From: Octopus bimaculoides
Taxonomy: Eukaryota
DNA length: 64,000 bases
NCBI RefSeq assembly: GCF_001194135.2
Contig: NC_068983.1
Location: 84,338,397 to 84,402,396 of the forward strand
Direction of reading: 5' to 3'
Position numbers and translations under genes: made by a program. The first letter of the stretch is position 1; every line of letters starts with the position of its first letter. Under the pieces are notes generated by a model that was given only the letters and a program-made list of their open reading frames with translations, searched no databases and was not told where the DNA came from. Positions 9,500 to 34,999 of the stretch are shown here, in pieces.

Positions 9500-9880
9500 T
9501 ATGAAGCAAGCGAAAGCGAAATTGTGATGGCACCTGTGCCCAGCGTCGCCTTTCTGGCACTTGTGCCCGCAGCATGTGTAAGGACTTTCGAGCGAGATCG
9601 TTGCCAGTACCCCTGGACTGGCTCTTGTGCGGGTGGCACATAAAATACACCATTTTGAGCGTTGCCGTTGCCAGTACCATCTGACTGGCCTTCGTGCAGG
9701 TGGCACGTAAAAGCACCCACTACACTCTGAGTGGTTGGCGTTAGGAAGGGCATTCAGCTGTAGAAACTCTGCCAAATCTGATTGGAGCCTGGTGTAGCCA
9801 TCTGGTTTCACCAGTCCTCAGTCAAATAGTCCAACCCATGCTAGCATGGAAAGTGGACGTTAAACGACGATGATGATGAT
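9500..9880 (+). mobile_element. RTE-LINE 3' end inserted in an (ATT)n tract
   Basis: Family 3' UTR ending cgttaaacgacgatgatgat. Confidence 0.8.
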
Positions 9881-11099
9881 GATTATTATTATTATTATTA
9901 AGGTGGCAAGCTGGCAGTATCGTTAGCATGCTGGGAAAAATGCTTAGCATTATTTCGTCTGCCAGTACGTTCTAAGTTCAAATTCTGCCAAGGTCAACTT
10001 TGCCATTCATTCTTTCAGGGTCGATAGAATAAGTACCAGATATACAAAATAAGTACCAGATGTACACTGGAGTCGATGCATTCGACTTAACCCCTTCCCC
10101 AAAATTGCTGCTCTTGTGGCAAAATTTGAAACCATTATTTTCATTATTATTGAGTGAGAGAGCAGTGCATGCCATCAAAGTGACACTGAAGTAAAATATA
10201 CAAAGCCCATTATACCCATAATGACTACCTGTCTGATAAGGGTACGCCAGGCACATGCATCACAACCATATGTGCGCGACATGGTGATCTCATATCAAGA
10301 TAAACAGCGCATGCCCTCGCAGGTGGGGCCCAGTTAGATCAGAACTGGTCTGGAACTAAAAAAATAGAAGGATGTCTGAAAACAAGATTTAAAAACTATA
10401 GGTCCTGTCCACTCTTGTGACTAAAATGTAATAAAAACGTTTGTTATTTCATTATTTACCATCAGTAACATAAGGTGTCCGAAGTGTCGCGTCTTGAGGC
10501 ATAGCGTAATACTTCTACACCACTGGAATTGGACCGGGAATTTGATATATTTTCCTTCAGATTTTTCGTTTGTATAAATTTATGATTTAAACGAGTGATT
10601 CGTAAGTTTATCTGTGGCGGAACTCTTATGCAATTTTTCAACAAACTGTGGGCCCTAATCTTGTCACCCTAATTTTGATAATACTTTAAAGAAAGCGAAG
10701 AAAATTTAGTCACGTTAATAAAAGCATATAAGTTATTATTATGAAAATGATATAATTTTCTACAAAATAAATTTCTATTAGATTTTATCAAAAGCGATTA
10801 TCTCGCTTTTAATAAATACGTGTTATAAAAAATAACGAAGGCAAATTTAAATTCAAGGGGGAATAACTAAAGTATTTACAAAATAGAGTTGTTTTTCATT
10901 GTCACAAATCTTGAGATCCCCAACCACCAAGTTGGGAAGCATTTGGTAGAAAGAAGAAACTTTTAGATTTTATTTATGTTTTATTGACTATCGTAGTCCG
11001 CAGGATATTTCTTCATTATAATAATTTTAAATGATATATTATGTACTTTATTGTGGTTTATTATGCGAGTGATCTGCTGATCCGGGCAAAAAAAAGGTT

Positions 11100-11745: not shown

Positions 11746-13426
11746 AGGAGTGGCAGAGGTAACTGCTCTATTTAGAGGAATGGAAAAGGGAGACTTTGAA
11801 CTAAAGGAAATGAAAAAGATTGAAAATAGGCAGCCAAACAGAAAAGGTCCATGGCTGTATTATATCACATTAATACTAATATTATTTTTTAACGTAAACA
11901 CAAAGTTGATAATCCTCAAAACACTAAGATATCAAACTAAGTTCACGTAAAGCAGCCAAGCTTAAATAATTTATTTTTCTAATAAAAAAAAGAGCAAAAA
12001 TTAATATCACGTGAACAGAGGAGTTTCTACACTGTCGCTCGGCCTGCTAGAAATAGCAGCCAAATCGTCCTTAACTTATCCCCTACCAAAAAAAAAACGA
12101 AAGGGATGGGGTGCATGTCCGACATCTCCGCGTTAATGGTTGAAATTTCATTCCCACTGTGTTATATATTTCAGTTTCAACACATGATCTCAAATCAAAT
12201 CCTTCGTCAAACATACATAACTTCGAAATATATAAAAGAAAAATAAACTTGAGCCAGCAACTGTCACTTTAAAATGGATAATAAACAAATTTATCTCCCT
12301 TCATGTGTTGGAACTCTCCAATAAGCGATTACTATTATTGAGGCGCTTCATTCAAATTTCAAAACTGAGCGACAAAAGTGTTTGAGACGGTTTGAGTGGA
12401 AAGGAGGTGAGTTGGATATATTTGTTATTGTTGAAAATAATTTTGGTAGAGATGGACTATATGTAATCTGAACCTTCCCCCCCCCTTATTTATTAATTTT
12501 TTTTACGGAATCCCATGTTTTAGGCTATGGAGATTCNNNNNNNNNNNNNNNNNNNNNNNNNNNNNNNNNNNNNNNNNNNNNNNNNNNNNNNNNNNNNNNN
12601 NNNNNNNNNNNNNNNNNNNNNNNNNNNNNNNNNNNNNNNNNNNNNNNNNNNNNNNNNNNNNNNNNNNNNNNNNNNNNNNNNNNNNNNNNNNNNNNNNNNN
12701 NNNNNNNNNNNNNNNNNNNNNNNNNNNNNNNNNNNNNNNNNNNNNNNNNNNNNNNNNNNNNNNNNNNNNNNNNNNNNNNNNNNNNNNNNNNNNNNNNNNN
12801 NNNNNNNNNNNNNNNNNNNNNNNNNNNNNNNNNNNNNNNNNNNNNNNNNNNNNNNNNNNNNNNNNNNNNNNNNNNNNNNNNNNNNNNNNNNNNNNNNNNN
12901 NNNNNNNNNNNNNNNNNNNNNNNNNNNNNNNNNNNNNNNNNNNNNNNNNNNNNNNNNNNNNNNNNNNNNNNNNNNNNNNNNNNNNNNNNNNNNNNNNNNN
13001 NNNNNNNNNNNNNNNNNNNNNNNNNNNNNNNNNNNNNNNNNNNNNNNNNNNNNNNNNNNNNNNNNNNNNNNNNNNNNNNNNNNNNNNNNNNNNNNNNNNN
13101 NNNNNNNNNNNNNNNNNNNNNNNNNNNNNNNNNNNNNNNNNNNNNNNNNNNNNNNNNNNNNNNNNNNNNNNNNNACATAGTAAATACTATATGCATAGAA
13201 AATTTCATTAAAAAATATTCATTTTTCTGAAAGTTATGACCTCCGAAAGTCTGGTGTGTAAAACCCTGTAGTTATGCCCATAAAACACCGGAGTTATTAA
13301 CTATGTTCGTGTTTATTAAATCAAAATATGTTATGGTTGTCTTGATAATTTATAGCGAAAATTATTATTTCTACTCTAGGCACAAGGCCTTGAAATTTTG
13401 CGGGGAAGGGGCTAGTCGATTACATT

Positions 13427-13528: not shown

Positions 13529-16424
13529 AAAAGGATGAAAGGCAAAGTTGACCTCGGCAGTGTTTCAATAATATTGGCATAATGACTCTCCTTAGACGCA
13601 ACAGAAATTGTCTTCTGTTGTTTAATCCCCAATTCAGACAGAATTTTGTATATTCAGGACAACGCATGACTATACACTGCTGATTTCATCATTTAAAATG
13701 TTAAACGGCATTATTAGAACTTTGTTGGTACCCTTTTAATATTAATAACAGTAAATAAGGTTTGACAGAATAAGTTGGCCAACGGATAAAAATGCCATCA
13801 GGCATTCAGCTACGCTTTACTTTTTAATTTCAAATCTCACCAAGGTTAGCTTAGCTTCTCAATCAACTACAGTCAATAAAAATGAAGTGCCAATGATGTA
13901 CTGTGCCAGTGTAATCTCATGTACTCATCGCCTCTTATCTGCATAGAATAAAACAAAAGCCTTGCTGTGTTGTATAATTTCAAATACAGTCCTCGCTACA
14001 ATATTAAGAATTTTAATTAAAAAATACTGGCGGAGTTTCGGATCAGGACGCCCACGTAAGCTAGATTTTCTCCGTTTCGACTGGGATTTTTTCAATTTTT
14101 TATTCCTTTCGCTCCTGAAAATGATGTGGCGGAGGCAGCTTTTTTATGAAAAACATTTTTGAAAATTTATTTTATTTTNNNNNNNNNNNNNNNNNNNNNN
14201 NNNNNNNNNNNNNNNNNNNNNNNNNNNNNNNNNNNNNNNNNNNNNNNNNNNNNNNNNNNNNNNNNNNNNNNNNNNNNNNNNNNNNNNNNNNNNNNNNNNN
14301 NNNNNNNNNNNNNNNNNNNNNNNNNNNNNNNNNNNNNNNNNNNNNNNNNNNNNNNNNNNNNNNNNNNNNNNNNNNNNNNNNNNNNNNNNNNNNNNNNNNN
14401 NNNNNNNNNNNNNNNNNNNNNNNNNNNNNNNNNNNNNNNNNNNNNNNNNNNNNNNNNNNNNNNNNNNNNNNNNNNNNNNNNNNNNNNNNNNNNNNNNNNN
14501 NNNNNNNNNNNNNNNNNNNNNNNNNNNNNNNNNNNNNNNNNNNNNNNNNNNNNNNNNNNNNNNNNNNNNNNNNNNNNNNNNNNNNNNNNNNNNNNNNNNN
14601 NNNNNNNNNNNNNNNNNNNNNNNNNNNNNNNNNNNNNNNNNNNNNNNNNNNNNNNNNNNNNNNNNNNNNNNNNNNNNNNNNNNNNNNNNNNNNNNNNNNN
14701 NNNNNNNNNNNNNNNNNNNNNNNNNNNNNNNNNNNNNNNNNNNNNNNNNNNNNNNNNNNNNNNNNNNNNNNNNNNNNNNNNNNNNNNNNNNNNNNNNNNN
14801 NNNNNNNNNNNNNNNNNNNNNNNNNNNNNNNNNNNNNNNNNNNNNNNNNNNNNNNNNNNNNNNNNNNNNNNNNNNNNNNNNNNNNNNNNNNNNNNNNNNN
14901 NNNNNNNNNNNNNNNNNNNNNNNNNNNNNNNNNNNNNNNNNNNNNNNNNNNNNNNNNNNNNNNNNNNNNNNNNNNNNNNNNNNNNNNNNNNNNNNNNNNN
15001 NNNNNNNNNNNNNNNNNNNNNNNNNNNNNNNNNNNNNNNNNNNNNNNNNNNNNNNNNNNNNNNNNNNNNNNNNNNNNNNNNNNNNNNNNNNNNNNNNNNN
15101 NNNNNNNNNNNNNNNNNNNNNGGGCATTTTTATTCTGTAGCTTAAAACTAAAATAAACTGCCTTGATACCCGTCGCTTTGAAATAGTTTGCCCATTTAAA
15201 ATGCTACTTTTTAAAATATTCCGTTTAAATTGCTGTATTTTGAAAGCTAATAAATTTACCAACATTTTCATTTCCAGAAAAATAGATGGTAGACGCTTTT
15301 TAATTGGTTCTCAACTAAGTTTAATAAATGGAGGCGGGGTAAATTTGTAATGAATAATTTCTGATTTCTTGTTATTTTCTCCCTACTTGTTTTAAACATT
15401 GCAAATATTGCATCATCTTTGGGAGTTAAAATTGATCAGCATAGTTTTTTTTTTTTTTTTTTTTTGAGGTTGAAAGCTTGAAACATAGGTAGGTGACAGG
15501 TACATATTTTCAAGAAATTTTTCAACTTTGACCCGATTATAGTTGAGGTTGCAAATAAAATATCTGGATAATTTTTGATGTTTAACAATCAATATTTTTT
15601 TTACCTTAGGTTTCCAAGTCAATTTTTTTTCTACAATGTCTAATTTGATCATTTTCAGTTTAAAAAAAAAAATGTCTGAACTGGGGCAAAATGAGTAATG
15701 ACTAATTTCAATTTTTTCTCTTCAACTACATGATTAATATATTGTGAAGAAGCTATGGAGAATATTTTCTGTTGAGTTGTTTTAGATTTAGACGAGTTTT
15801 GTTAATTTCATATCATGTGCCATTTTTTGAAGATCCTCTTTCATTTGACTTAGATATTATAAATTTTTGTTGCATTTCTGATTTCTAAGAATGGATATTG
15901 ATGTGTATGTGTCTTTTCTCAAATGTAATTCTGGAGAATTGAAGGGGCAAATTTACCTTATCTTATTCATTTCGCCCTGGCTAAATTTGTCTTTTATATT
16001 CTCAAAGAGAATGGAGATAATTTTCTGAAATAGCATTCAGGTTATGTTATAATACTTTTAATGCATTTAGAAAAGGTCATTTGCTTAGCTGATTTAGTTT
16101 TTGTAAGGTACTGAACATTTGTACCAAAATAATTTTTTTTCTTAAAGTCAAACAGTAAATCTTATTGTGTCCCACTCCATCCCTAATCATTTGATATTGT
16201 TTTACTAAAAGCATTTATTTTTAAAATATTCTTTTTTCATATTCTGTAAACTTTGTATATACATTGTACAATATTTGCACTTATTTAAGATAACTTCCCC
16301 ATAAATTATATTCCTAATCAAGGTTCTGTTTTTGTGATTCATTTTGACTTGAAATTTGTCAACAAACTACTCAGCAATTTCCATGGACATATCGAAGTGG
16401 AAAGAGAAAGCTAATGGGCTGTAC

Positions 16425-16739: not shown

Positions 16740-18415
16740 ACCACACCAGTAGGGGCAACAATCTTAACATGCTTGAATGTTTGAATGATGACAGGTTGAA
16801 AGTGAGAACAGGTGTAGCATGTCTATCAAATGAACACGAAAACCTTCTTCTTTTCAGGCACTAAATAACATCTCCCCTCCCCATGCTTTTTCCCACATTC
16901 CTTTCCTAGATTTTAGAGTTGGCACTATCAATGTAGGCACAGTGGGATTGTAGAGATGCTTGAACGGAGATGTGTTGATGTATGCTGCATACAAGAGGTA
17001 AGGTGGAGAGGAGCTTCAGCCAGGGTCCTCACAGGCAAGGTACAAAGGTATAAAATCTTCTGGGAAGGTAACAGTGATGGAGTAGGGGGTGTAGGCATAC
17101 ACCTTGTGGAGAAATGGTTGGATAAGGTCATAGAGGTAGTTAGGGTATGCGATAGCATGCTTAAGCTTAGGCTAGTCCTGCAGAATAGTATAGCTACAAT
17201 TATCTCTGCCTACGCCCCACAAGCAGGCCTACTAAATGATCAGAAGGACCACTTTTATGATACCCTTCTACAGGCTACCTCAAAGACGAGTTGCAATGAC
17301 CTCATCTTTGCAGCTGGAGATTTTAATGGTCATGTCAGACAGCAATCCAGTATCTTCCATGGTGTTCATGGGGGACATGGAATTAGTTCCCAAAATGAAG
17401 AGGGAACTAGGCTACTGGAGTTCTGTGATGCATGCAACCTATTAATCTGCAACACTAATTTCTGGAAGCTAGACAGCCACCTGATAATCTATCAATCAGG
17501 CGACTCTGCTAGCCAGATTGATTTCATCCTTACCAGACAGTGAGATACAAGGTTGCTCTTAAATGCAAAGACCCTCCCTGATGAAGAATGTACCCCCCCC
17601 CCCNNNNNNNNNNNNNNNNNNNNNNNCCCCCCCAGCATAGATTAGTTATTAGTGACTTTAGACTCGAGGCTAGAAGGATGTTAAGAAGCAGACTAATCCA
17701 GAAAAGAAGGATTTGGAAGCTAAAGAACCCTTCACATGGTCAGAGATTTAGGGGCATCCTCATTGAGAAATTTGATGAGAGGGAGGAGGACCTACAAACT
17801 TCGGACATAGAGGGTAACTGGAAATTCCCGTGGGACAGCTTACTGAGCACCACAGACCAAATCTGTGGCTGGTGCAAAGTCCTTTCCAGACCTAGAGTAA
17901 CGTGGTGGTGGAATAATACGGTAGATAAGGCCATTAGAGCAAAGAAACAGGCCTGGAAAGCCTGGAAGAGTCGGAGTAGCAGGGAACTGTACCAGATAGC
18001 CAGAAGGGAGGCTGGGTGACAGGTATACATTGCCAAAGGAAAAGCAGAAAAGAAGTTTGCCAATGTTCAGTGACATGAGGACCAAAGAACTAAAGTATTT
18101 CAGATTGCAAGACAGTGTGTGAGAGAAAATTGTGATGTCACAGGAGAGAAAGGTGTCCGCATGGGTAATGGTGCACTTACTTTTAATGATTCTGGAGAAG
18201 CCATTATGGAAGGCTGCTAAATGTGGAGAATGAATGGGAGGAAGAGAGCCTGCCAAATGTTGACCCAGTAGAGGGACCAGCTACCCAAATAGATAGCACG
18301 CTGGTAGATAAAGCAATTAAGGATATGATGTCAGGAAAAGCCTTCAGCCCATCAGGAATCACTGCTGAGATGCTTAAAATATCTGGTGGTGTGAGTCATG
18401 GCCTAGTCACCCGTA
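16740..18415 (+). mobile_element. RTE-LINE 5' part (APE endonuclease to start of RT), 3'-truncated
   Basis: VDVCCIQEVRWRG, IISAYAPQAG, AAGDFNGHV, SQIDFIL, PQHRLVISDF, RVTWWWN; stops and frameshifts. Confidence 0.9.
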
Positions 18416-19431
18416 TTTTATATATATAGATAATCAATGTTTTCAGGATTTTTTTCTTTTAATTTCATAGTTGTTAAACATGCACCACATCCCTTTACAT
18501 AAAAAAAAAAAAAAACAGAAGGTGGCATGCATGTTTAACATCTCTACTGAATCATCCAAGCAGAAATAACACAGTTTTACTGATTATTTTCTCAAAAGTT
18601 AGTAAATTCAAGTGGTAGAAGGAACTACATTCAATAAATTGAAATTAATTGTTTTACTGACTGAAGGTTTTAGTAAATCTGTTGCTATTTTTTAATTACC
18701 ATTTCTCTGTTTTATTTTAGTCTCTCCATCTTCGTCTTTTATTTGTTGTTTCTTTTTATCACTCAGTCCAGCTATTTCCAGTAGGTTAAGCAACCACTTA
18801 CAATTTCCTTAAGAGAGCCAGATAGGGCATTCAATGTATTGAGACAGTAGACAATATGTTGTCTGTTTTTCTAGATGCTCATCTTCTTTAAATGTGCCAA
18901 TCATGACCATCACATCCTTTTTTGGGCCTAAGTAACTGTTTTTAATAATGCATAATTTTGCATGTGCAAAAGGTTCAAGGAATCTATTTTCTGTTTGGAA
19001 AATTTTTCAGTTTTAGAGCTTAAACTGAAATATCCAATCATCCTTGATAGAGCATTTGAGAGAAGTATGAATGTCACAGCTGCATTTCCTCATCACTATA
19101 ATATCCTTTCCTTTGTAACCTTCAGAGAACTTGTAAGATACCAACTTCTGTTTTGATTCAAGAATATATATTTTATTGTGTTGTTTATGGTGTTTCGGTC
19201 AATTAGGTCAAACCCTGATCAAGCAGAAAATTGATCGCAGGCATTCTAGTTAACCACCTTGTCTTTTCCTTTTATTTTTAGTTGTAGTCATCTGAGATTG
19301 CATTATCCAATATTAAATAACGACATATTCTCATTTTGGCATAATATACATCCAAATATTCTTGGCTTTGAATAAAGTTTGCTGATCTGCCCATCTTAGG
19401 CTGGCATTAATAGAATGGTTTGTTCACTTAA

Positions 19432-19709: not shown

Positions 19710-19909
19710 TTAAGCATTGCTTAATTGTTTGAATAAATGTCAATGTTAAGGTTTGCTAGATTCAAATTGAGTATATGAAAAATATACAGGAATCTTTCAG
19801 TCTATAACTGATTTTGATTTAACTTTTTTTTTTCAGTTTAATGAAACATTGTTATATAGCATTAACATAATGTTAATATTTTCTCTTATTGTATATCTTT
19901 TCAGTTAAA

Positions 19910-21739
19910 ATGAGTTTAATGGATGAATTAGTATCAGCAGGGGTTGACTCAAATGAGTTTTTGGGCAATCCTCTGAAGCATGACGATTTTGTTGCAACAA
20001 ATAATTTGGATGATTCTTCTTTGTCACATTCAGTTTGTGAGGACTTTACAGTGGACTTAACTGACATGAAAGATATTTACGCAAGCAGTAGATGTAAAAA
20101 TTTATATGGTAATGTTGACACAACTAACAAAAATAATTCTGTTTTGTTTGAAAACTGTGCCATGAATTTGGAGCAAGAACTTGAACAAGCAGTGACTTTA
20201 ACTGGTTCCTCAATGGCAACTACTTCAAATCAAGAGAGCTTTCAAGAATCCAACCTTGAAAGTAATTCTTTAAATGTAAGACAAGAACAAGTGCATGCTA
20301 TGTCCCAGTTAAGAGAGGAAAATATAAACCAAGTTCAAGAAATAAGTAGAACGCCTAAAGAAATTTTGTCATCAGAAGAAGAGCTTTCCCAAGCTTTCTC
20401 ATCAAATTCAAAGACTTGTGGAATTTTAGAGATGAATGAATCAAACAGTGATAATAGTTATAAAAACCAAGATGGTTGCAATATTGAAAACTATGATGGT
20501 AACATGAAGAATTGTGACAGTGAGGACACTAGTAACTATGAGAATAGGGTTAAGAAGATTCCTGACATTGATGCTGATAATTATGTTAGTGATAATGAGT
20601 GTGGTGATGATAATATTGTTGATCATGATGTTAGTATTAAAGACTATGACCCTGATGATATTGCTGATTATGTTAAGGATAACAAGGGTCAAGAAAATAA
20701 CGAAATTCATTACTATAGTATTAAAAACCATACCAACAATAACATTGTTAATTATGATAGTAATATTAAGAGCTATGATAATACTAATGTCAATGCAGAT
20801 CACTCAGTTACTAATATTAAAGACCATGATGGAGATAATATTGGTAATGATGTTACCAATGATAGTAATGACCATGGAGATAATGAAACTGGCAACAATC
20901 ATAACAATGATTATGGGGATGATGGCTCCAAATTCTTATGTGGAAATTTAGTTGATGAATATGATGTTACTGCAGAGACAGACAAAGATATTTCCAGTGT
21001 TGTAAATAACTTCAGTCTTGAAAGAAACGTGGAAAAAGAATGTACTTTGATAAAGGATGAAATTAATGATGGAAACAGTTTGGGATGTCATCATATTGAT
21101 ACAGAAAAGTCAAGACTTTCTACTGAAATTGCTGTTAATGTTGATATGACAGAGAGTCCTACTAAAATCGCCAATGATGTGGATATGATAAAGACCAGGT
21201 CCCCTACTGAAATTGACCTTGATGTGGATAGGATAGAGACTGAATCCTCTACAGAAATTGACATTGATGTGGAAAGGATAAAGACTGAATCCTCTACAGA
21301 AATTGACATTGATGTCGATATGATAAAGACTGAATCCCCTGTCAAAAATTCTAACACTGTAAATAGTTTTACTGCTGAAGAAACTCTCAATGCTAGTATA
21401 AAGACAGGGCCAGCTTACAAAGTTACCGTTGACTGTAACAATGCAAACAGTGCAACAATGTCATTTATGAAGAGCGAAACTGACCATACAAATAAAAGTG
21501 TAGTTGAACAATCGGCACAGGATTCACAGTTAGAGGTCTGTGAAACATTTGAAGATTTATATCTGCAAGAAAAGTTTTTAAAGAAAGAGAGAGAAGTGGA
21601 GTCTTTAACAAAGCAGTTAGATGATAAACAAAAAGTGATTCATCAGGCTGTAAATTTTGGTAAGCAACTTCTTGAAGAAAATGAGGAACTCAAAGAAAAA
21701 GTGGACAAACTTGAGCAGAAAATTATTACAATTGATGAG
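19910..21739 (+). CDS. SPDL1: Spindly coding exon 1 (610 codons): acidic N-terminal extension plus start of coiled coil with CC1 box
   Basis: Acceptor tttcag|TTAAAATG (exon from 19905), ATG at 19910, uninterrupted 1830-nt frame, donor GAG|gtaatg. The end of the exon, QAVNFGKQLLEENEEL, matches the AAxxG-type CC1 box (human AAQYGLQLVE). Confidence 0.9.
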
Positions 21740-22437
21740 GTAATGTATTCTTTAGATAATCATGAATAAAGGCATGAGTTTGCAGTACTGAAAGTATAGA
21801 GATGCTAGCAAATATACTCATTTTCTACACGCATACAAGTGCATGTATATATTAGTATTTAAATATTAGCATGTAGTTGCATGCGGAGTTATGTATGTAT
21901 GTTATAATTTTAGCATCAGATAGTATGTGCCGCATTTAAATGTAATACTGTGATTTGATCATTCACTAAATACTATTATCCATTCACTCAATTACTTTCC
22001 ACCATTTTCAAATATAGTAAAAAAATAAGGTCAAGTTTTGGTCTTTTTAGATTGTCTTAGCAAAGCATATTCTATACTGTTGGTAAAACTATTGTGTGTG
22101 TGTACATATATATATGTATATATAGAGTATGTAGCTTTCACCTGTTGACTTAAAGACTAGATCTACTTCTACATTGAATTCTTTACAGTTTTTTCAACTT
22201 CAGTTGATTTTTAGACTTGTTTCTATTACTTTTTTTTTTTTTAACAATCTCAGAAGTAATTTTTATCTACTAATTGTATCAATAATTTCAATTTATCAAA
22301 AGTTTCTCTGTGCACTACATTTGTGAGACTATCATATTTGGTGTTTAGTAAGTAGAATGCTCTTCTGAACATATTATTGATATTCATTACATTCCCTGTG
22401 TATGTATTTGTATGTGAATATATATATATATAAATAA

Positions 22438-22816
22438 ATACAAAAATGGGACAAGAACTCATAACATCCAGACAGACGATACAAAGAAAACAAGGATGGG
22501 TCATTCAGAGTTTTCTATCCTCAGTCAAGTTCCAGATTATCTTTGCAATTTCAGCTGGTTATACTCGAGATTGCTCCAATCTGGCCAGCCCCAAGGAAAA
22601 ACTAAGCTAAGAGCATTAGGTTCCTTGGAAGAAAGCAGCAAATGTATACAAAAACAAGGACGGAAAAAAACAGAGAAATGTTACATGAATACAAAGGCAA
22701 TTAACAGGACAAAACAACAGGTGTTTTTCGACTAAGGACGAATTAAATTAAGCTGGCGCATGTTGAAATATCACCTGTCTGTCTGGATGTTTTGCGTTCT
22801 TGTCCCATTTTTGTAT
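22438..22816. mobile_element. MITE with ~40-bp TIRs, flanked by TA-rich DNA
   Basis: atacaaaaatgggacaagaac...aacatccagacagac is mirrored at both ends with 2 mismatches. Confidence 0.8.
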
Positions 22817-22892
22817 TTTTTTTATATATAAAATATAGCAGCATACGTACACCTCAGTCTCATATATATATTACACACACGCACACACACTC

Positions 22893-23108
22893 AATGGGGT
22901 GCTGAAAAGTTTCTGGCTTTGGGTAAAAGAAAATACAGGAGGATCAGCTAATTATGATTTTATTCAACATATTCCCCTCTCAGATTCACACACTTATTAC
23001 AGCTGTCCTTCAGTTTTTCTATGCCCTGTAAAAGAACTTGGAAGGATGGGCCTCCAACCAGGCTCTTTGCAATACCCTTAAAGCTAGGAACTTTTCACCA
23101 CCCCCTCA
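22893..23108. mobile_element. Mariner-like MITE
   Basis: ggggtgctgaaaagtttctggcttt versus aaagctaggaacttttcaccacccc; TA-rich flanks. Confidence 0.65.
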
Positions 23109-23304
23109 TATATATATATGAATTACTCTTAGTGTTACCATCTAAGTAGAATATGCTTTTCTGAAAAAAACTAAAACTAGTCTGTTGCGTTTATAAGTTG
23201 TTTTGAAAACCAGGTCTACTCTCATATTGAATTTCCATTATTCCAAAACATTTATTGATTGTATTGTAGTCTTTTTCCTCTTAGATTTTAAACGTCATTA
23301 GTGG

Positions 23305-23460
23305 TGTAGGCATGGCTGTGTGATTAGAAAGTTTACTTCCTAACCAGATTGTTTGGTGTTCAGTCTTATCACTTAGCCAAGTGTTTTCTACTCTGGCTCC
23401 AAGCTGACCAAGCCTTGTGAATAGATTCGGAAGACTGAAACTGAAAGGAGTGCATCATAT
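23305..23460 (+). mobile_element. SINE family B. Other copies at ~27330-27500, 33590-33775 (-), 37895-38035 and 63710-63860 (-)
   Basis: Shared gctgtgtg(g/a)tt...ggttca...gcaagtgt(c/t)ttct...aaagccttgtga...gaaactgaaag. Confidence 0.65.
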
Positions 23461-23479
23461 ACTTACATATATTATATAG

Positions 23480-23830
23480 AGACAATGATTCAAATAAACA
23501 GATAAAACCTTGAGTCTCAATATACAAAATATATATATATGTATACATGTAAAAAGTGACAGCAGATTTAAAATTTTCAGATGATTAACAATCCAGTATA
23601 AATATATACATATTTTTTAATAGACCAAACTTACTCAGATTACATAGACTCAAAGAATTAGAGGGGCAAAGGTGTTACAAGTTCGACAGCTGTTTCTGAG
23701 GGCTCAGAGTTACTTCATAATGTTGGCAGATGTAGGTCATCAGAAATTTGCAGCCTGTAATGGAAACAAATAAACATTGGTAAAATCCAGAGCCTCCTTC
23801 ATCAGGGTGGATAGATAAGAATCTACATTA
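23480..23830 (-). mobile_element. Penelope-like pseudo-LTR remnant with a hammerhead-like motif
   Basis: Minus strand has CTGATGA (23799-23805, 23737-23743) and GAAAC-AGCT-GTC (23685-23696). Confidence 0.5.
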
Positions 23831-24485
23831 TATATGTATGTGACTGTGTGTTTACAGTTTGGATTCTATGAAAGTTTCTCAATTCAAGTAGCGTTGTTGT
23901 TACTTCTATCTACAAATTGCCTGCTCCTTCACACCGAAGATATGTAAATTAGATATCCCTTACTTGATGAACAAGTAAGGATTAGCAAGGGGGTCATCTA
24001 GCTGAAAAACAATATCTTAATGATATAACCATCTAACTCATGCTAGCATATGAAAATGAACTGAGAGAAAGTTTATATCTATTGTATTGATAATCCCAGT
24101 TAATCTATTTTTCTGCTCACTATATTACATATGTGAGATCTACTTTACTTACTAGTCTTTGTGTGTGCTATTCTAGTTTGCTAAATCCGATTATATTCCC
24201 AGTTTTATTGAAATCTTTGATAGAAAACATAGCTACCTACTAACTACTCCCACACTGCATGAAGCCTTTCTTCAGAACATTCAGCTCATTTGTATACATG
24301 GAACTTAGAATGGTTTTGTTTCCAGTATCTTCCTTTCTCTTCCTTTATGGGCTGCAGCTGTGTATAAGAACTAAAGTAGTTGATTAGTATGATATCCACA
24401 AGATATTCTTGATCCACTTGTTGATTTAATCCTCAGATATATTGAAATATTTTAATTACTACATTCTATTCTGTTTGTCTTGCAG

Positions 24486-24647
24486 GAACTGAAAAATGAG
24501 AAACATTCTACAAAATTCAAGTTAGAATCCAAAGAGTACATGGAAAAGCAATATAATGAAGAAATTTCGCTGCTCCAAAATGAAATAACTCAATTCAAAA
24601 AAGAGGTGGAGTCATACCAGAAACAAGAAGCTACTTTGAAAAGAGAA
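24486..24647 (+). CDS. SPDL1: Spindly coding exon 2 (ELKNEKHSTK...QEATLKRE)
   Basis: tgcag| ... |gtaagt, 162 nt, phase 0/0, heptad coiled-coil; NEKH aligns with human QEKY. Confidence 0.9.
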
Positions 24648-25039
24648 GTAAGTTAAATAGTTTTGTATGTGAATATATATACTCCCAGAATTTTGTAAAC
24701 TCATCAGCTTCATGATTAATGATATACAGGTTTGTTTTGTGGGAGGAGAAGGGATACTTATGCAATCATATATGTGCAGAATCTGTAATGACCGGAACCA
24801 AAGTTTCACAGTGAGTATTATGAAAATTCAAGGAAGGTTGAAATCATGTGGTCTCAGCATTAGACATGGTGGGGATTTATCCTCCCACTAGCGATATAAG
24901 CAAGAATGCATTTTGCACCAAAAGCCAATACAAGAGGTTATCTCCTGCAGTATAATTTGTTCTAACAGAACATCCACGTTTAAGTGGGCATAAATATTAC
25001 TTTTCAGTATTGATATTGCCTCTGTTAATATTATGAACA

Positions 25040-26130
25040 TTATGCTTATAGCAGAACTGGATTTTGAAGTGTAGTGCCAAAGTGGTGTACAGAATAGACA
25101 AAGAACTTAGATTCTTGAGGCCTCACTAACAGCTCTGCTATACTAGAACATGGGTGACTAGGTGATCTGTATGTTGTGGTTGTAGAAGTATTCAAGTTAA
25201 AGTTAGACAAATTACTCGGGAAGAGCTTATCCATACCACCTATAATTCTGGAACCAAAGGAATAAGTTACATCTTCATACACTTCCTCTTCATCAAAAAC
25301 CAATCATTGTAATTTATACCTTTTCCAAGCTGGCATGAGAGAAATGAGTCTGCAGTACACCATATTGTTGCTTCTGTCAAATTTATGGTATTTTAGTTGT
25401 GAGGCATAACATACTGAGGTCCAATCCCACCATTTCTTCCCTTGACTTCCTTTATCTTTAGCATTTATCAAGTCATCATTACATATTCATACTAACAGTC
25501 CCCTATCCTGCACATGTTGATCAATGCTTTTAATGCCCAGCTGTTCCTTCAGCCAACTTGTTCTCAGCTTGTCAAGAAACATTTTTCATACTCAAATCAA
25601 TTCTCTGGCCATTGCAAATTTTCTGAATTGAATGCACATCATATTTCTTACATATAAAAAAGGTGGTTTATATAAAACCACTTTTTTTGTCTATATAAAA
25701 CATATGTACCTTGTTACCAACAAAAGTAACTCCAAATGAACCTCTTCCACCTCAGTCCTACTTTGACTACCATATTCTCATTACTCCAGCACAAAGTAAG
25801 TTACATATCTAACAAACCATCAGTTATATCTCTAGTGAGCCATGTGGGTACTATATGTACAACATTTCACTGATACTCCTATTCCTATCTTGCACAGCTG
25901 AAGTCTGGTTCTCTTGTTTATTTGCCAGAAATCACTATACTTTTTTGAGTATCCATTGCATGCATTGAGTACACATAAAGTTGCTCTCTACTCTCTTCTA
26001 ATATATTGAGCAAGGCCATTTTTCAACTGGTACTAGGATTTTGTGCTCCTTATTTATGATTAGTACTCTGCTTTATCCCATGTTTGCCTAACAATGAACT
26101 ACATTTGTGCTATGGTGAAACCATAGCTGG
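25040..26130. mobile_element. Heavily decayed LINE fragments: CR1-like 3' end (+) and RTE-like (-)
   Basis: EVFKLKLDKLL on + resembles the CR1 copy at 52.6 kb; LKEQLGIKSI on - resembles the RTE C-terminus. Confidence 0.45.
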
Positions 26131-26165
26131 AACACTGAAACCTATACAAAGTACAAGAAAGAATA

Positions 26166-26579
26166 CCGTAAATCCTCAAGTATAATCTGCACTTTTTCCC
26201 CAAAATTTAAAGGTCAAAATTTCTAGTGCGTACTATATACGAGGTTAAAAATGAAAAATATTTTCTAAGCAAAATTTTCTAAGTGATAAATATGTAAAGG
26301 CAAAATATTTATTTTTCACGGACGTTATTATTGTTATTTCTTTATTTTCTGCAAAGTGCACAAAAAAGCTATATGCTTGCATTATGTTATATATACAATA
26401 ATAATAAAGGACGTTACCATATATACGTTTACAAATCAAGGACGTTATATAGACCTCCTTGACTCAAGTTAGAGAAGGGGTGCATATTATACACAAGGTT
26501 TAGGTTTTTCAGAGGCACAGCCACCTAAAAATCCCCTGCGTATTATACTCAAGGGTGGACTATACTCGAGGATTTACGG
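26166..26579. mobile_element. Tc1/mariner (pogo/Tigger-like) MITE
   Basis: TA TSDs and 19-bp TIR ccgtaaatcctc(a/g)agtata. Confidence 0.85.
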
Positions 26580-27705
26580 TATATACCTACTTATTTAATG
26601 CAATCAAAAGTCTGTCCAAACTCAAGAAATTTTTACTGTTTGAGTTGGGAGAGTCATTAATGTTGGTAAAAATGGCTTCCAACATTTGCTCCAGCTTTTT
26701 ACATTCTGAATTCAAATCCTTCCAAGGATGATTTTGCTTTTTGTTCCTCTGGGGTTCAATGAAATTGAATACCTGCCAAGTACATGGGCTCTGTCATGTC
26801 AATCAACCTCTCTCCTAAAAATTGCTGTGCTTTATGCTTAAATAAGAAATCCTTGTTTAGTCTATAGAGATACAATAAAAATCCCCAACCTTTTGAGGAC
26901 TTCATTAATTGGGATATAGTAACAGTTGGGGTATGGCTATTCATGTTTAGTTTGGACTTCAGGAGGTATTTGGTGGTAAAAACACAAAGGTAGTGTGGGA
27001 AATTCCAGAAGAGTAATATTTCAAGGAAGAAAAATCTGACAACATGCCTAATTCTGAATCTGGTGAGATGTAGTTTGGGTAACTGGAGGAACAGAGATTG
27101 TCCAGATTAATTTAGGTAAGTTCGGAGGACTGGCTACTATAATAGCTGCCAACATTTTCAGTATATTTTACACAGCAGTTATGATAAATCTGATTGAACA
27201 CTTCTTTTTTTACACATCATAACACTGAAGAAAAAAATTGCATATTAGTCATCAGAGATATTTTTGTAGGATTTTACATCTCATAATTAATGATATGCAT
27301 TAGACATGAATAAATATGATAGGTGCTGGTGTAGCTGTGTGGTTAAGAAATTTGTTTTATGGCCACATGGTTCTGGGTTCAATTTCACTACATGGCACCT
27401 ATGGCAAGTGTCTTCTGTATCAAAGCCTCAAGTTTTACTCATTCTTTGTGAGTGAAATTTGGTAAGCAGAAACTACAGAAGTCTGTCATGTGAATGTATG
27501 TTTGCAAATTTTTTGTGGCATTTACTTACACCTGAAAAAGAGATTGAGTTTACTTTGAATTACATTTAATAAATCAATCAATAAAATGAGTACCAGACTA
27601 ATACTGAAGTCAGTATAATAGATGGAAACCTTTGAAGATAGTACCCCAGCATAGCTACAGTTCAGTTACTCAAATCAGTGAAAGAGTGTGTATTGATTAT
27701 TTTTG

Positions 27706-27862
27706 TGAGGACTGGTGAAACCGGATGGCAACACCAGGCTCCAATCTAACTCTGCCAAATCAGATTGGAGCCTGGTGTTGCCATTCGGTTTCACCAGTCC
27801 TCAGTCAAATCGTCCAACCCATGCTAGCATGAAAAGCGGACGTTAAACGATGATGATGATGA
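27706..27862 (+). mobile_element. Very short RTE 3' insertion with a 42-bp fold-back at its 5' end
   Basis: 27706-27747 is the reverse complement of 27762-27803 (1 mismatch); (GAT)n tail follows. Confidence 0.9.
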
Positions 27863-27945
27863 TATATATATATTGTTTGTTATTGCTGTAACATGAAATG
27901 CAATCTTTCTTTATATTTGCATACAATTTGAATTAAATGATGCAG

Positions 27946-28140
27946 TTGAGAAACAAAGATGACTTACTTGAACAGTCAAATTTAAAGGAAGAACAATTAA
28001 CTACAACAATTAAAAATTTAGAAAAACTGCTCCTTGAGAAAACTGAAGAAGTTTCACATTATCCATCTCAAAGTTTATGCGATGATAATCAACAGCAAGT
28101 TGTACTGGAAAAAGAGGTGTTAGAACTTCAAACTGAATGT
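27946..28140 (+). CDS. SPDL1: Spindly coding exon 3 (LRNKDDLLEQ...LELQTEC)
   Basis: tgcag| ... |gtaagt, 195 nt, phase 0/0, open coiled-coil frame. The acceptor pyrimidine tract is somewhat distant. Confidence 0.85.
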
Positions 28141-28639
28141 GTAAGTGTCCCTTTTTTTTATTTGAAACATTGGCAACTAAAGAACCATTGAGCATAATGT
28201 CATTCTTATTATGTAAAATATTACAGTTGAATAATCAAACAGAATAAAATCCAATAAGCCATTTGGGATTTGTTTATTTAGAAGCATTCGGAAGTTATTT
28301 AATCTTTTCATCATTGTAATACATGATGCTAATGAAAAGTCATTGATTATGGGACCAAGATTAAAAATAATAATTTATCAGTATCTTAAAATGAAACAGT
28401 AGTGGAGTAGGTCAAGACAATACAGTGTCAGATTAAATCTTAATGTGGTTATCACTTCTAAACCTATTATATCTTACCTTTAAATATTTGTCAGCTACTA
28501 CTGTTGGAAAAAAAAAACATTCCAGGTGTGAAAAAAAAGAGCAAATAAATGTTAAAATAAGATCTGCTTAGAAGTAATGTTTAAATATAATGACTTATAA
28601 CATATCTCTCTCTCTCTTTCGCTCAACATTGCTTTACAG

Positions 28640-28789
28640 ACAAATTTGAAAGCTCAACTTATCAGCAGTCATGCTAACACAAATCGAGTGGAGGAGGAGT
28701 TGTTGAGGGTTAAAAGAAGACTTGATGAAAAACAGCAAGAATATGAAGAAGTAAGAAGTGAAATGAACTCCTATCAAAAAACTCTTGAG
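28640..28789 (+). CDS. SPDL1: Spindly coding exon 4 (TNLKAQL...SYQKTLE)
   Basis: tttacag| ... |gtatgc, 150 nt, phase 0/0; SYQKTLE aligns with human SYYNALE. Confidence 0.9.
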
Positions 28790-28930
28790 GTATGCTTTGT
28801 AAAGCCATTTACTTGATGTAAAGAATTAATGAAATTAGCTTCATGAGTTTCATCATAAAATATCAACTTCATTTAAGTGAGTAGTTTGGTGAATTGCACC
28901 CTTGAAATTGAAGAAGTCATTTATTTTTAA

Positions 28931-29138
28931 CCCTTTAGCATTTAAACCAGCCATATCTGGTCCAAATATTCTATCTGTTTTATGTTCGAACTGACCAAAT
29001 CTGGCCAACCATGTCATTCTGAAAAATAAACAATTTCATTGACGACTTCTCAAAGATACAAGATAATGCATGATTAATTCAAAACAATGTGAATAAAATA
29101 ATTATAACATTTGACAGAGTAATGTGAATGCTAAAGGG
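28931..29138. mobile_element. piggyBac-type MITE
   Basis: TTAA TSDs and 12-bp TIR ccctttagcatt/aatgctaaaggg. Confidence 0.85.
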
Positions 29139-29297
29139 TTAAAGTTTAATGACTGGTGATTTAATAAATCTAAATTACTCTTATAGTATCTCATATGTTT
29201 TGGTGTTATATCATTATCATCATAATTGTAATATGATATTCCTATTTTCCATGAAATTAGCTATATAATATTTAATTTTATATTTCTCTTATTGTAG

Positions 29298-29396
29298 ATA
29301 TCTCAAAGAGAAATCCTTGACTTAAAGGCTCAGTTGTATGCTGCTCAGATTGAGAACATGAATCGGCAAGACAGAGGCAATTCTCTTTTCTCTGAA
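29298..29396 (+). CDS. SPDL1: Spindly coding exon 5 containing the Spindly motif (…DRGNSLFSE)
   Basis: attgtag| ... |gtaagt, 99 nt; GNSLFSE matches the Spindly motif GNSLFAE. Confidence 0.95.
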
Positions 29397-30789
29397 GTAA
29401 GTACATTACAGCCTTATTAATTTATCTTGGGGATTTTTTTTTTTAGTCAATAAAAATTGAGTGCAAACGATTAGCTTGTAAGAAGTGTTCAAGCACTGTA
29501 TAAGGAAAAGCTGTTTTCTCTAATAGTTATTCTTGCAAAAAAAAAGTAAGGTCGTGTATGAATGAAATGTGAGTAATAGATGAACAGGGTATTCTAATGT
29601 GATCCACTGAATGTACTACAAGCTTCAACATTGGTAAATTGAGAGAATGATTATTGGTATTGCATATTAAAGGTTAGATATTAAATTGCACAGGTTAATG
29701 GTTGAAAGTGCATTAAATTGGAGATGAGTTGATGCAAGATTGAGACTTGTGTGGAAAAAAAAAACTTTTTCAGACTCTTTCAACCAGTTCAGCATAATAA
29801 AATGGTTATGATAATGATGTTAATGTTTGACATTGAGGAATTATATTTAAAACAAATTTTGTTGTATCAAATTTGTAATAAACTGGCTATTAATAGAATA
29901 TTATAGGCTATACTTAAATGTCACCATCATGTATTGTATGTTTTTGCAGCACGTTGATGACACCATGATGAGAGTCTTCCTGATTAACCATGAATTCTCC
30001 AATCACATAAAATCATAGTGTTACTTCATTCTGACTTTCATAGTATTTTCTTGGCAGAGATATTGGGATGGTTTGCCATTGCCTTCCACAACTGGATGGC
30101 TGTTAGCCCACAAGGAGCCCATCCACCCTTCAACAGGTCTTGTTTCTAATCTTATCAGGTGTCCGGACATCCTCATCACAAGAGTTGCAAGCTACTCGAA
30201 TTGAGGATCCAGTTCAGTTGCCGACTACTTGACCATAGAAGAGGTAGTACTGGTTTACATGGTATCCCTGACATGACTCATATAAATGGCTGTTATAAAA
30301 AATTAATGTAATCTTTTTATACGGTGTATTAGATCCATAATCCATTAAAGACTTAGTTGTTATACTGTGTATTTAGGATATCATCCAATCCCACTCTGTT
30401 ATAACCATGGGAAGTGTTGAATTGAGTATTTACAAGCTAGCCAACAAGAGTGTCTCTACTACATACTGTGAAACAGTGAAATGTTTCTTAAACCACAAAG
30501 TTACATAAGAAAAGGGAAGGACACATTAACTAAGGTATTCTTGGATACATTGTCCGAAAATCAGATGGTGTAGTTATAGCTAAAACTCTTTGATTATAGG
30601 TATTCTTGTTCAGAACTAACCTGGGGATAAACAAAACTCAAAGTATTAATAGTAGTGTGAATGTTGTATAATCAATGAGTACTTGTAATATTCACAACTA
30701 GGTGGACTAGGTCATTGAGTGTTATATCTCTGCCATTAACATGTCACAAGTGGTCACAGGTTATGAATTATTAATTGGTAGTCCAACTG

Positions 30790-32850
30790 ACCATCATCAT
30801 TTAATGTCCATTTTCTATGCTGCCATGGGTTGGACAGTTTGACAGCAGCCAGCAAATCTGTGTCAAGTTCAACTGTCTGCTTTAGCATGGTTTCTACAGC
30901 TGAATGCCCTTCCTAATGTTAACCACTCTACAGAGAATACTGGGTGCTTGCTACATGGCATCAGCAGCAGTAAAGTTGCCAAATAACTTATATGACTCTT
31001 CAAACTGAGTAGGAAGTAGTATTGATGTGAGTGGCTTTGTACCAAGTGATGAAAGGTTAGGATGTGAATAGAGTGACTGAAATAAGTATCTTGCAGTAAA
31101 GGAGACACATGGTTACTCCTCAGTAGGAAACAGAGGTGATTGGAGATGATGATGTGATGGTTGGGTACACTCAAGTTACAGGGTGGAGTATATAAGTGAA
31201 GTGGACCTAAGAATTGGATAGGCTGGGTAAGTTTGTGAGATTGCAAAAGGAGAGTGGGTGTTGGAGGGGAGAGAATATTGTGAGTGAACACAAAGGGAGG
31301 GTTTTATTAGGTAGGGACACACTGTGTGCTGGTAGGTTCGTGAGGGTACAAAGGGAGAATGGGAGATGGAGGGAATACAGTGAATGGTGAACTTAGGTGA
31401 GGAGATGTGGGAAGTGTTAGGAAGATGGGTTGTGCGGAAGAGATTTGTCAGGGACAGACTGTGCAGAATGTGCGCAAGGGCATGGGCATAAATGACCTAC
31501 CTTTATGACCTTCATTTTACTTAACTGGACTGGTCTTCTCAAGCACAGGAAATCACCAATCATCTCCCTCCTTTGTCATCTCTTCTGTAAGACTCAACAT
31601 CTGAAGATCATTTTTCACCACTTCATCCCACATCTTTGTGGTTCTTACTCTTCCACAGATTTCCTCCACATTTAGAGATCAGCATTTCTTTGTGCAGTTG
31701 CCTTCATTTGCATCACATGACCATACCAGTACTGTCTTCTCTCTCAACACATTGGTCTTTAACTCTGAGGTACTTTGATTCCAGTCATTGTTCTCTTCTT
31801 TACTTCTACTAAGATTCATCTATAAGAACAAGATTCATCAGCATAGAGAAGCTCCCATGGGCAACCAGCTTTAAATTTCTTTTATGGCCTGGAAGACTAT
31901 GATAAACAAAAAGCTAAGAACTGAGCCTTGGTGATCTACCTGCTCATTAAACTTGTTAACACACTCATTACTGACTTTCACTTTAATAATAACATCCCTG
32001 TACATGGCTTGGACAGCTTTCAGCATATCAATAAATACCAATTACAGCAGTTTATTTTTGGCTAAATGCTTTTGCTGTAGTTGCCTTACTTGGAAGATAG
32101 CATCAGTAGTGTTTATCCTGGCATAAAACCAAACTGCATCTCATCTAGGTTGACTCTCTTCCTAATTAGTTGAGCTATGACCCTTTTTGTAACTTTCCTG
32201 ACCTGGTCCAGAAATTTGATACCTCTATAATTACTTTTTTACCTTTGAGCAGTTAACTATGATACTGCTACTCCTTCCTGGATGGCATGATTAACTATAC
32301 AGGTGACTAGGCTGTATCCCACTCTGTCAGATATTTAAAGTATCTCAGTGGTGATTCCTGATGGATCAGGAACTTCCCCTTCATATCATTAATTATCTAT
32401 CATACAGTTGTCAACTTGGATAGCTGATCCCTCTGTTGGGTCCATATTAGGAAGGCCTTCCTTTTCCCATGCATTCCCCACAGTGAGCTGCCTTTCATAG
32501 GGACACTGCCTGGCCACTTCCTTTTCAGAGTCACTAAGTACAAGTGTACCAACATTCATTCAAACACACATCTCTCCTTCAACATCACAATTTTTTCTGA
32601 CTCACTGTTTTGCAATCCAAAACACCTCAATCCTCTAGTCCTCATACCGCTGACAAACTTTTTTCCTTTCTGCTTCTCCCCTAGCCAAGATTTACCTGTC
32701 ACGAAGCTTCTCTTCTAGCTACCTGATATAGTTCTTTGCTCCCCCAACCCTTCCAGTCCTTCCACACCTGTTTCTTTGCTCTTTGGCACTGTCTATTTCA
32801 CTGTTCTACCACCATGTTACACTAAATCTGGCTGGAACTTTACTCAAATC
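30790..32850 (-). mobile_element. Decayed RTE-LINE (RT domain to 3' tail) in Spindly intron 5
   Basis: Family 3' end at 30790; internal similarity to the RTE at 17.9-18.4 kb (the TWWN segment and the gatcccgtagagggaccagc-like segment). Confidence 0.75.
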
Positions 32851-34574: not shown

Positions 34575-34609
<35 letters not shown>

Positions 34610-34888
34610 CTAAATTAAAGTACTAAAACTTGTAAAATGGCTCAACAAGATAAATGTGAGTTTCTTAAGACATAAAAGTCCATAACAGTTAATCTAAGAG
34701 CTATTACAAATGTATCCTAGGGTTCACTTTGGCAAAAATTGTCCACCCTTGTGATTTTATCTTTAAAATGTGACATTGTTGCAGATTTTACTGTCACCAC
34801 CAAAGAATTTTTTTTATTTTTGCTTATGGGCTTCTTTTTCATTTTTGATTTCAAAGCGAATGAAGAATGCAATTTATTTTCTTACTAG

Positions 34889-34999
34889 TTGGAAGATCGC
34901 CGAATTTCTGTTGAAAAAACATTAATGGCTCTACAAGAAAATTACCAAGTCTTGAAAGAGAAATATAATTTGGAAAAGCAACAAAATTATAAACTCAAA
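34889..34999 (+). CDS. SPDL1: Spindly coding exon 6 (LEDRRISVEK...NYKLK)
   Basis: cttactag| ... |gtatgg, 111 nt; LEDRR continues the motif (human VEDRR). Confidence 0.95.

Follow-up and report, generated by a model that had tools for sequence, protein, structure and literature searches.

A long, fast-evolving and predicted disordered N-terminal region of the dynein adaptor Spindly in coleoid cephalopods

In this study, we report the analysis of a 64,000-nucleotide stretch of the Octopus bimaculoides genome (contig NC_068983.1, positions 84,338,397 to 84,402,396 of the forward strand; hereafter the window), which carries an orthologue of the kinetochore dynein-dynactin adaptor Spindly (SPDL1) with a long acidic extension ahead of its CC1 coiled coil. 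Residues 1 to about 546 are very probably a translated, conserved and disordered part of the protein, to judge from the reading frame and its evolution. Taken together, the comparisons described below identify a real, coleoid-wide, fast-evolving disordered N-terminal region with a few conserved short motifs.

The gene model was built by mapping the O. sinensis Spindly isoform X1 (P0002) onto the window by tblastn, followed by splice-aware refinement of the junctions. The resulting model comprises 10 coding exons between 19910 and 38958 on the forward strand, with introns that are all GT-AG, and encodes a product of 1131 amino acids (Table 1). Exon 19910-21739 is a single frame without stops up to a GT donor directly after 21739. 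No runs of N (assembly gaps) are present within 19910-38958, and the locus is collinear with the O. sinensis chromosome over the entire gene. A preliminary description of this DNA, made from the sequence, had placed an AVNFG CC1 box at residue 580 of an 1131-residue Spindly, with a long extension in the same exon as the conserved coil; the rebuilt model reproduced these and all further numbers, and exon 19910-21739 was confirmed as one stop-free coding exon holding both. As the splice acceptor ends at 19903, just 5' of the ATG, this exon is not the first of the transcript, and at least one upstream exon, either 5' untranslated or coding, should exist. The junction is conserved in O. bimaculoides, O. 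sinensis, Argonauta and a third octopod known from Logan contigs L001/L002 only (hereafter the Logan octopod), with tcttttcag closing the intron and T(T/C)AAAATG opening the exon, and in decapodiforms cag is directly followed by ATG. The upstream exon of the O. bimaculoides gene was sought within the window and not located, and the 16-residue upstream exon of the 968-residue O. vulgaris isoform (MASNNGDDVGLQQF) had no match there. In O. sinensis, MASNNGDDVGLQQF is encoded twice (L003, 5676 and 7794), both copies lying inside a duplicated 3.7-kb segment (L003 4968-8693) that is missing from the window (junction ~18419-18420) and partly matches repeats at window 32238-32841 on the minus strand.

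On its sequence, the gene is a Spindly orthologue and an otherwise canonical adaptor that departs from the family in the position of its CC1 box. The core showed 89% identity to O. sinensis Spindly over 587 amino acids and matched Bufo bufo Spindly with E = 7e-24 at 91% coverage, and phmmer matches down to 1e-50 were named Spindly proteins of Haliotis, Lingula, Mercenaria and Patella. Besides core homology, the protein possesses the other sequence characteristics of the Spindly family (PF28219), namely the CC1 box, the Spindly motif, which in this family is the motif for dynactin pointed-end binding, at the proper spacing (226 residues from the CC1 box, against 214-232 in homologues) and a C-terminal CAAX box, so that the identification given in the preliminary description stands. 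A Pfam scan of the full 1131-residue protein returned no families, and a PDB sequence search with the core returned nothing; PF28219 is precomputed on the orthologues P0002, P0003 and P0013. Since the Pfam scans were empty, the family assignment rests on homology, on the motifs and on the PF28219 hits of the orthologues.

Human Spindly (SPDL1/CCDC99, 605 amino acids) and other metazoan Spindly proteins resemble the octopus protein in their AAxxG-type CC1 box, the spacing of ~226 residues, the Spindly motif GNSLF[AS]E[VL]EDRR, the coiled-coil core with homology along its whole length, and a disordered basic C-terminal tail with CAAX (CAQQ in octopus, CPQQ in Bufo), but have no counterpart of octopus residues 1-545. 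The farnesylation CAAX box of Spindly is missing in fly and worm. The octopus AVNFG, with Val as its second residue, is a predicted CC1 box for binding of the dynein light intermediate chain (LIC), and it falls inside a confidently predicted helix (residues 547-609). The box is AVKFG in the Logan octopod, AVNLG in Argonauta and AVEVG in Haliotis, and its first two residues are AA in 41 of 55 homologues and in decapodiforms; A580 and G584 are invariant in coleoids. The CC1 box is defined as AAxxG, and the human double mutant A23V/A24V serves as an LIC-binding negative control (PMC9481740). Human Spindly is farnesylated at Cys602, and farnesylation of the CAAX cysteine is needed for RZZ binding (PMC9058546); the octopus CAQQ is predicted from its sequence to be a CAAX box of this kind.

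When 1.84 billion representative proteins were searched exhaustively with phmmer, 112 hits were obtained, among which residues 1-545 were matched by octopod proteins only; in all other homologues, query residue ~560 aligned with their own residue 3-25. The CC1 box was found at residue 7-39 in approximately 40 non-cephalopod proteins in which both motifs could be located (Haliotis, Patella, Mercenaria, Sinanodonta, Batillaria, Pinctada, Lingula and Bufo included), that is, within the first ~40 residues of the canonical layout, compared with residue 580 here. The extension is accordingly absent from gastropod, bivalve and brachiopod Spindly, and the possibility, raised in the preliminary description, that it might already be common among lophotrochozoans was not borne out. 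One apparent exception was a MetaClust protein, UPI00078A449E (P0125), of 1669 amino acids, which clusters with Lingula Spindly and has its CC1 box at 970; this is probably an older fused gene model and not a second lineage with an extension.

Several lines of evidence indicate that the extension is coding. The probability of 557 stop-free codons arising by chance is 6e-22 given the composition of the segment and 3e-18 given that of the window, and the remaining five frames of the segment contain between 23 and 119 stops. Base periodicity by codon position was strong in the extension (chi2 = 255, p = 3e-52) and weaker in the Spindly core (chi2 = 118), with none in intron 1 (chi2 = 5.4, p = 0.49). 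Relative to O. sinensis (3, 573 and 45 nt) and the Logan octopod (6, 3, 180, 12, 3, 6 and 9 nt), all 10 indels in the exon are multiples of 3, compared with 0 of 6 indels in the short flanks. The ratio of nonsynonymous to synonymous substitution rates (dN/dS, Nei-Gojobori) of the extension was 0.40 (bootstrap 0.23-0.77) in the comparison with O. sinensis and 0.53 (0.37-0.78) in that with the Logan octopod, no higher than the 0.64 (0.41-1.06) of the Spindly core against O. sinensis, from which O. bimaculoides is ~5% diverged at neutral sites. The dN of 0.036 is also lower than the intronic substitution divergence (~0.054-0.07). These results agree with the earlier argument that so long an open frame implies coding constraint. 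Substitutions are modestly constrained, yet no less so than across the rest of the fast-evolving Spindly protein, and the reading frame is under absolute constraint. Within the extension, conservation is highest in the first 11 residues, which argues that translation begins at the ATG at 19910.

Residues 1-557 contain 69 N, 65 D, 60 S and 52 E, giving 21% D+E and a net charge of -76. In an AlphaFold2 prediction run on a five-sequence coleoid alignment, a short helix was placed at residues 3-9 (predicted local distance difference test score, pLDDT, ~68), residues 19-543 scored below 50, and a confident helix was obtained for residues 547-609 (pLDDT 86-97). The acidic and disordered character proposed previously is therefore upheld, while the length requires adjustment: with the CC1 helix beginning at ~547, the non-coil extension comprises ~545 residues and not 557. 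Residues 1-545 had no Pfam match (scan of the exon-1 protein) and no match in a PDB sequence search.

Within this region, conservation is concentrated in short elements, of which the N-terminal motif is the clearest. M1, L3, M4, D5, E6, L7, A10 and G11 are invariant across four octopods and the cuttlefish, and the counterpart in the second decapodiform is LSLMDELANAGFG. Set against the LIC helix and the FFAT, LC8 TQT and nuclear export signal motifs, with no computation run, the N-terminal motif showed no convincing match. The MNLEQELEQA motif, which is present in one copy in octopods, matched by BLASTP the cuttlefish repeat NVGLNLEQELQQA, and in that species a 132-nt unit with this motif as its core is repeated 4.4 times. 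Conserved islands inside the disordered region include SKFLCGNLVDEYDVT in Octopus, and the two decapodiforms share islands of their own, LYTDPV..LNFSDVDDITSFNEK and LNTLEYLGF..ERLKS. A further conserved element, the CETFEDLY segment, leads into the coil.

Other parts of the extension vary in length. The low-complexity block of 573 nt is missing from the O. sinensis genome itself and is thus not an intron of its gene model, and the Logan octopod is without a 180-nt part of it (~60 residues). The first half of this block does find a counterpart in Argonauta and in the Logan octopod, so that its absence is a deletion in the O. sinensis/O. vulgaris lineage. The tandem repeats, the core of which is a 45-nt x 3.6 array at 21175-21337, change in number by whole units, with one more in O. 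sinensis than in the window and 22.6 in Argonauta. A D-M-x-K-x-x-S-P core is common to the repeat of octopus, DVDMIKTRSPTEIDL, and that of Argonauta, IEDMTKLCSPNKTAT. Two S-P-x-K sites lie in the octopus repeats (SPTK at 416 and SPVK at 476), and each Argonauta unit bears SPNK; in total, [ST]-P-x-[KR] sites number 2-3 per Octopus extension and 20 in Argonauta, and none occurs in any of the ~575-residue cores.

The preliminary description knew of this architecture in no other Spindly protein; the implication that it is peculiar to this gene is not supported, as the public O. sinensis, O. vulgaris and Argonauta gene models include the extension and two decapodiform genomes have the same open frame. 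The same exon is present in five further genomes. Extended models comprise the O. sinensis isoforms X1-X4 (X1 being XP_029633598.1) of 952, 937, 922 and 922 amino acids, the O. vulgaris models CAI9719836-8 of 968, 952 and 752 amino acids, and the Argonauta hians model GAB1600604.1 of 1408 amino acids, in which ~830 residues precede the coil, the CC1 box is at 854, and extension and CC1 coil are encoded on one 2652-nt exon. In these other octopods the CC1 box lies at positions 373-854. O. sinensis X1, O. vulgaris CAI9719837.1 (952 amino acids each) and the Argonauta protein resemble the O. bimaculoides protein in starting with MSLMDEL, in the single-exon layout, in the islands, in a homologous repeat, and in a CC1 box that is AVNFG or AVNLG. 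They differ in that the O. bimaculoides protein retains the 191-residue block absent from O. sinensis and O. vulgaris and has one repeat unit fewer, and in that Argonauta has ~22 repeat units within its longer extension. The difference between X1 and the O. sinensis isoforms X2-X4 (P0007, P0006 and P0009) is exactly one or two units of 15 residues, a pattern closer to repeat-number alleles or misaligned reads than to regulated splicing.

The annotated Spindly model of the cuttlefish Acanthosepion pharaonis (CAE1320291.1/P0003, 670 amino acids) omits the extension, its N-terminal motif SLNLMDELANAGFG being followed by the CC1 box within ~50 residues. We considered whether this might be a genuine short form. 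Its 'intron' (L005 23500-25164), bounded by GT and AG, was found to be 1665 nt of in-frame, stop-free sequence, and from the acceptor and adjoining ATG through the end of the CC1 exon the cuttlefish frame counts 657 codons without a stop; the model is thus most probably mis-spliced. The first exon of P0003, of 47 residues, lies 20 kb upstream and is without a counterpart in other coleoids, and the model is probably wrong at this exon as well as at the 1665-nt intron. A second decapodiform genome (ENA ERZ21867824, L006) contains the same open frame, of 639 amino acids from an internal Met that is preceded by cag and ATGAACAGAAATCAAGGTAAAACCTTAAGCCTT, with 54% identity to the cuttlefish frame over 601 aligned residues. 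No stops, which the preliminary description had allowed for in the orthologous region, interrupt the frame in octopods or in either decapodiform.

The decapodiform loci resemble those of octopods in the acceptor and ATG, the LMDELxxAG motif, ~600 stop-free codons sharing an exon with the CC1 coil, an NLEQELQQA motif and a disordered-type composition, but differ in the repeat unit (44 residues against 15), in the CC1 box (AAELG) and in the body of the extension, the alignment between octopods and decapodiforms being confined to the N-terminal motif, NLEQELEQA and the pre-CC1 segment. Every coleoid sampled, from Octopus and Argonauta to the two decapodiforms, retains 490-830 disordered acidic residues ahead of the coil. 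The presence of the same frame in octopods and in two decapodiform genomes indicates a coleoid-wide trait, ancestral to coleoid cephalopods. It is therefore better described as a long spacer of variable length that separates a conserved N-terminal motif from CC1 than as an 'N-terminal extension'. No relevant account of an N-terminal extension in cephalopod Spindly was found in the searchable literature; the coleoid extension is thus present in database gene models without having been described there.

The explanation that best accounts for these data, and which we consider probable, is that the first coding exon of the octopus SPDL1 orthologue would open with a translated segment, 19910-21547, in which ~545 disordered, strongly acidic residues would join a short N-terminal helix (MSLMDELVSAG) to the LIC-binding CC1 coil. 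The region would evolve through in-frame indels and through growth and shrinkage of tandem repeats, whose units measure 45 nt in octopods and 132 nt in the cuttlefish, with a few short islands staying in place. A number of points count against this explanation. The case for translation of the extension is drawn entirely from its evolution, and that for any regulatory role from motif resemblance. Nucleotide identity of the exon to O. sinensis (95.6%) barely exceeds that of its immediate flanks (94-95%), which suggests weak constraint on substitutions, and the losses of 191 and ~60 residues suggest that much of the length is dispensable. In addition, the cuttlefish model P0003 joins the N-terminal motif to the pre-CC1 segment across the 1665-nt in-frame interval, and the O. 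sinensis isoforms X2-X4, by differing in 15 or 30 residues, imply small spliced intervals within the exon, so that a degree of processing inside it may occur.

The similarity of exon and flanks, and the survival of the gene through in-frame deletions of 573 nt (O. sinensis/O. vulgaris) and 180 nt (Logan octopod), would be expected if the extension were translated but essentially neutral, a repeat-prone spacer drifting in length since the coleoid ancestor, with a functionless body. The frame and the N-terminal motif alone would then be maintained, since a frameshift or stop would destroy the essential core downstream; selection against frameshifts 5' of an essential domain is by itself enough to account for indels in multiples of 3. 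The range of repeat units (3.6-22.6) and the narrow alignment between octopods and decapodiforms also fit. However, the dN/dS of 0.40-0.53, with bootstrap upper bounds below 1 and values not above the core, the islands conserved in Octopus and between the two decapodiforms in addition to their 54% overall identity, and the retention of 490-830 residues, not their loss, in all coleoids sampled are evidence against neutrality, which we regard as a real possibility but not a probable one. The cuttlefish and O. sinensis models might instead be taken to mean that the long frame is mostly bypassed, the main product being a canonical-size Spindly and the long form rare or tissue-restricted, either by in-frame 'exitron' splicing or by an internal transcription start and a downstream ATG such as that of M517 at 21458. 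In O. bimaculoides, an internal splice resembling that of the cuttlefish model, from GT at 20109 to the AG ending at 21529, was rejected as it removes 1421 nt and is out of frame; this was a single pair, read by eye, in AT-rich sequence that offers many. Intronic or pre-start DNA would not be expected to stay stop-free, 3-periodic and frameshift-free in six coleoid genomes; the cuttlefish 'donor' is simply the Leu-Tyr codons TTG and TAT; the O. sinensis, O. vulgaris and A. hians models all retain the extension; and isoform differences of 15 and 30 residues equal one and two repeat units, for which alleles or read misalignment are a better fit. Bypass of the long frame thus appears quite unlikely. 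That the frame is an artefact, arising by chance, from misassembly, or by fusion of Spindly with a transposon or a foreign insertion, has a negligible probability. The DNA is AT-rich and of low complexity, and assembly gaps exist elsewhere in the window, but the chance probability is ~1e-18 or lower, the gene is free of N runs and collinear with O. sinensis, the exon recurs in five other genomes, and the segment has no second copy in the window and no homologue beyond cephalopod Spindly. The cross-species comparisons refute the chance, misassembly and transposon origins.

As to the function of the region, the preliminary description had suggested that it could change autoinhibition, corona assembly or cargo range. 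The CC1 box of Spindly, besides binding the dynein LIC helix, lies opposite CC2 when the molecule is closed and autoinhibited; human Spindly 22-605 remains closed and 33-605 opens (PMC9481740). Fusing mCherry to the N-terminus of human Spindly abolishes neither its kinetochore localisation nor its recruitment of dynactin (PMC9481740), which indicates that bulk ahead of CC1 is tolerated. If the region is translated as proposed, it would form a flexible tail that extends from the adaptor at its LIC-binding end and bears candidate short linear motifs, namely the N-terminal helix, NLEQELEQA and the S-P-x-K repeats, which conform to a proline-directed consensus of the CDK type. These motifs may dock partners or be phosphorylated, and so tune access to the CC1 box or autoinhibition, with the core dynein-dynactin-RZZ adaptor mechanism left unchanged. 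Such a specific regulatory role, by docking or by multisite proline-directed phosphorylation tuning CC1-box access, is put forward tentatively, and we think it rather doubtful. Less likely still is a more elaborate version in which the LMDELxxAG helix and the acidic linker with its S-P-x-K sites would constitute a coleoid-specific regulatory module. This could be an intramolecular lid or pseudo-ligand, controlled by phosphorylation and directed at the CC1 box or the basic C-terminal tail, gating dynein LIC binding and Spindly autoinhibition, or a docking arm providing cephalopod Spindly with an extra, non-kinetochore partner. Among CC1-box adaptors, TRAK1/2 and HAP1 have a substantial non-coil N-terminal segment and still engage dynein-dynactin; they belong to different families without sequence relationship to Spindly, and their N-terminal segments are shorter and not acidic or repeat-bearing.

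Table 1. Positions of features in the window (position 1 is the first nucleotide of the 64,000-nucleotide stretch)
Feature	Position	Strand	Basis or remark
Open reading frame	19889..21769	+	Stop-free; first ATG at 19910, context TTAAAATGA
Polypyrimidine tract and CAG splice acceptor	19889..19903	+	6 bases 5' of ATG
Acidic, N/S-rich, predicted disordered region (residues 1-546)	19910..21547	+	Open frame, periodicity, pLDDT, dN/dS
Start codon and N-terminal motif MSLMDELVSAGV (residues 1-12)	19910..19945	+	Alignment; AlphaFold helix 3-9
MNLEQELEQA motif (residues 85-94)	20162..20191	+	Alignment; one copy in octopods, repeated in decapodiforms
Low-complexity D/N/Y-rich block, 573 nt (191 codons)	20229..20801	+	In-frame absent from O. 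sinensis and O. vulgaris
Conserved island SKFLCGNLVDEYDVTAETDKDISS (residues 340-363)	20927..20998	+	Identical or near-identical in three Octopus-group species
Tandem 15-residue repeats, D-V-D-M-I-K-T-x-S-P/S-T-E-I-D type	21155..21346	+	Tandem Repeats Finder
Start of CC1 coiled coil (residues 547-610)	21548..21739	+	Same exon as extension; conserved to cuttlefish
Predicted CC1 box AVNFG (residues 580-584)	21647..21661	+	AAxxG-type dynein light-intermediate-chain binding motif, Val second
Remaining nine coding exons, first five	24486-24647, 27946-28140, 28640-28789, 29298-29396, 34889-34999	+	tblastn and splice-aware model
Remaining nine coding exons, last four	35320-35460, 36958-37058, 37400-37584, 38537-38958	+	tblastn and splice-aware model
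Spindly motif GNSLFSELEDRR (residues 806-817)	spans 29376-34903	+	Splice-aware model
C-terminal predicted CAAX box CAQQ	38944-38955	+	Splice-aware model
Runs of N (assembly gaps)	3366-3757, 12537-13174, 14179-15121, 17604-17626, 44438-45395, 49999-50555, 52516-52525		
Dispersed ~220-bp repeat, five copies	1586-1801, 3127-3315, 9666-9885, 36523-36743, 52106-52286		

Outside the Spindly gene, a polyubiquitin gene is located 3' of it on the minus strand (window ~43494-45794), interrupted by the gap at 44438-45395; its O. sinensis counterpart encodes 803 amino acids of ubiquitin repeats (L003 32348-34759), and part of the sequence in the long 'ORFs' at the window locus consists of N. Runs of N also account for the very low GC content seen in places along the composition profile of the window. 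Each copy of the dispersed ~220-bp repeat, one of which lies within a Spindly intron, is 87-89% identical to O. sinensis L003 17295-17518, and the repeat is probably an element resembling a short interspersed nuclear element (SINE).

The region described here is a real and somewhat surprising lineage-wide feature for which no consequence has been demonstrated so far, and if it proved to be neutral it would be a mere curiosity of lineage-specific growth of disordered sequence. It has a bearing on annotation, as the published cuttlefish model drops the region and homology-guided predictors will tend to do likewise in other cephalopods. The N-terminal coil of Spindly serves both LIC binding and the closed state, and human truncations show that this end of the protein controls opening (PMC9481740). 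Coleoids have kept 490-830 acidic disordered residues in front of that coil since the split of octopods and decapodiforms, which makes them a natural experiment in how much added sequence an activating adaptor can tolerate, or put to use, at its LIC-binding end.

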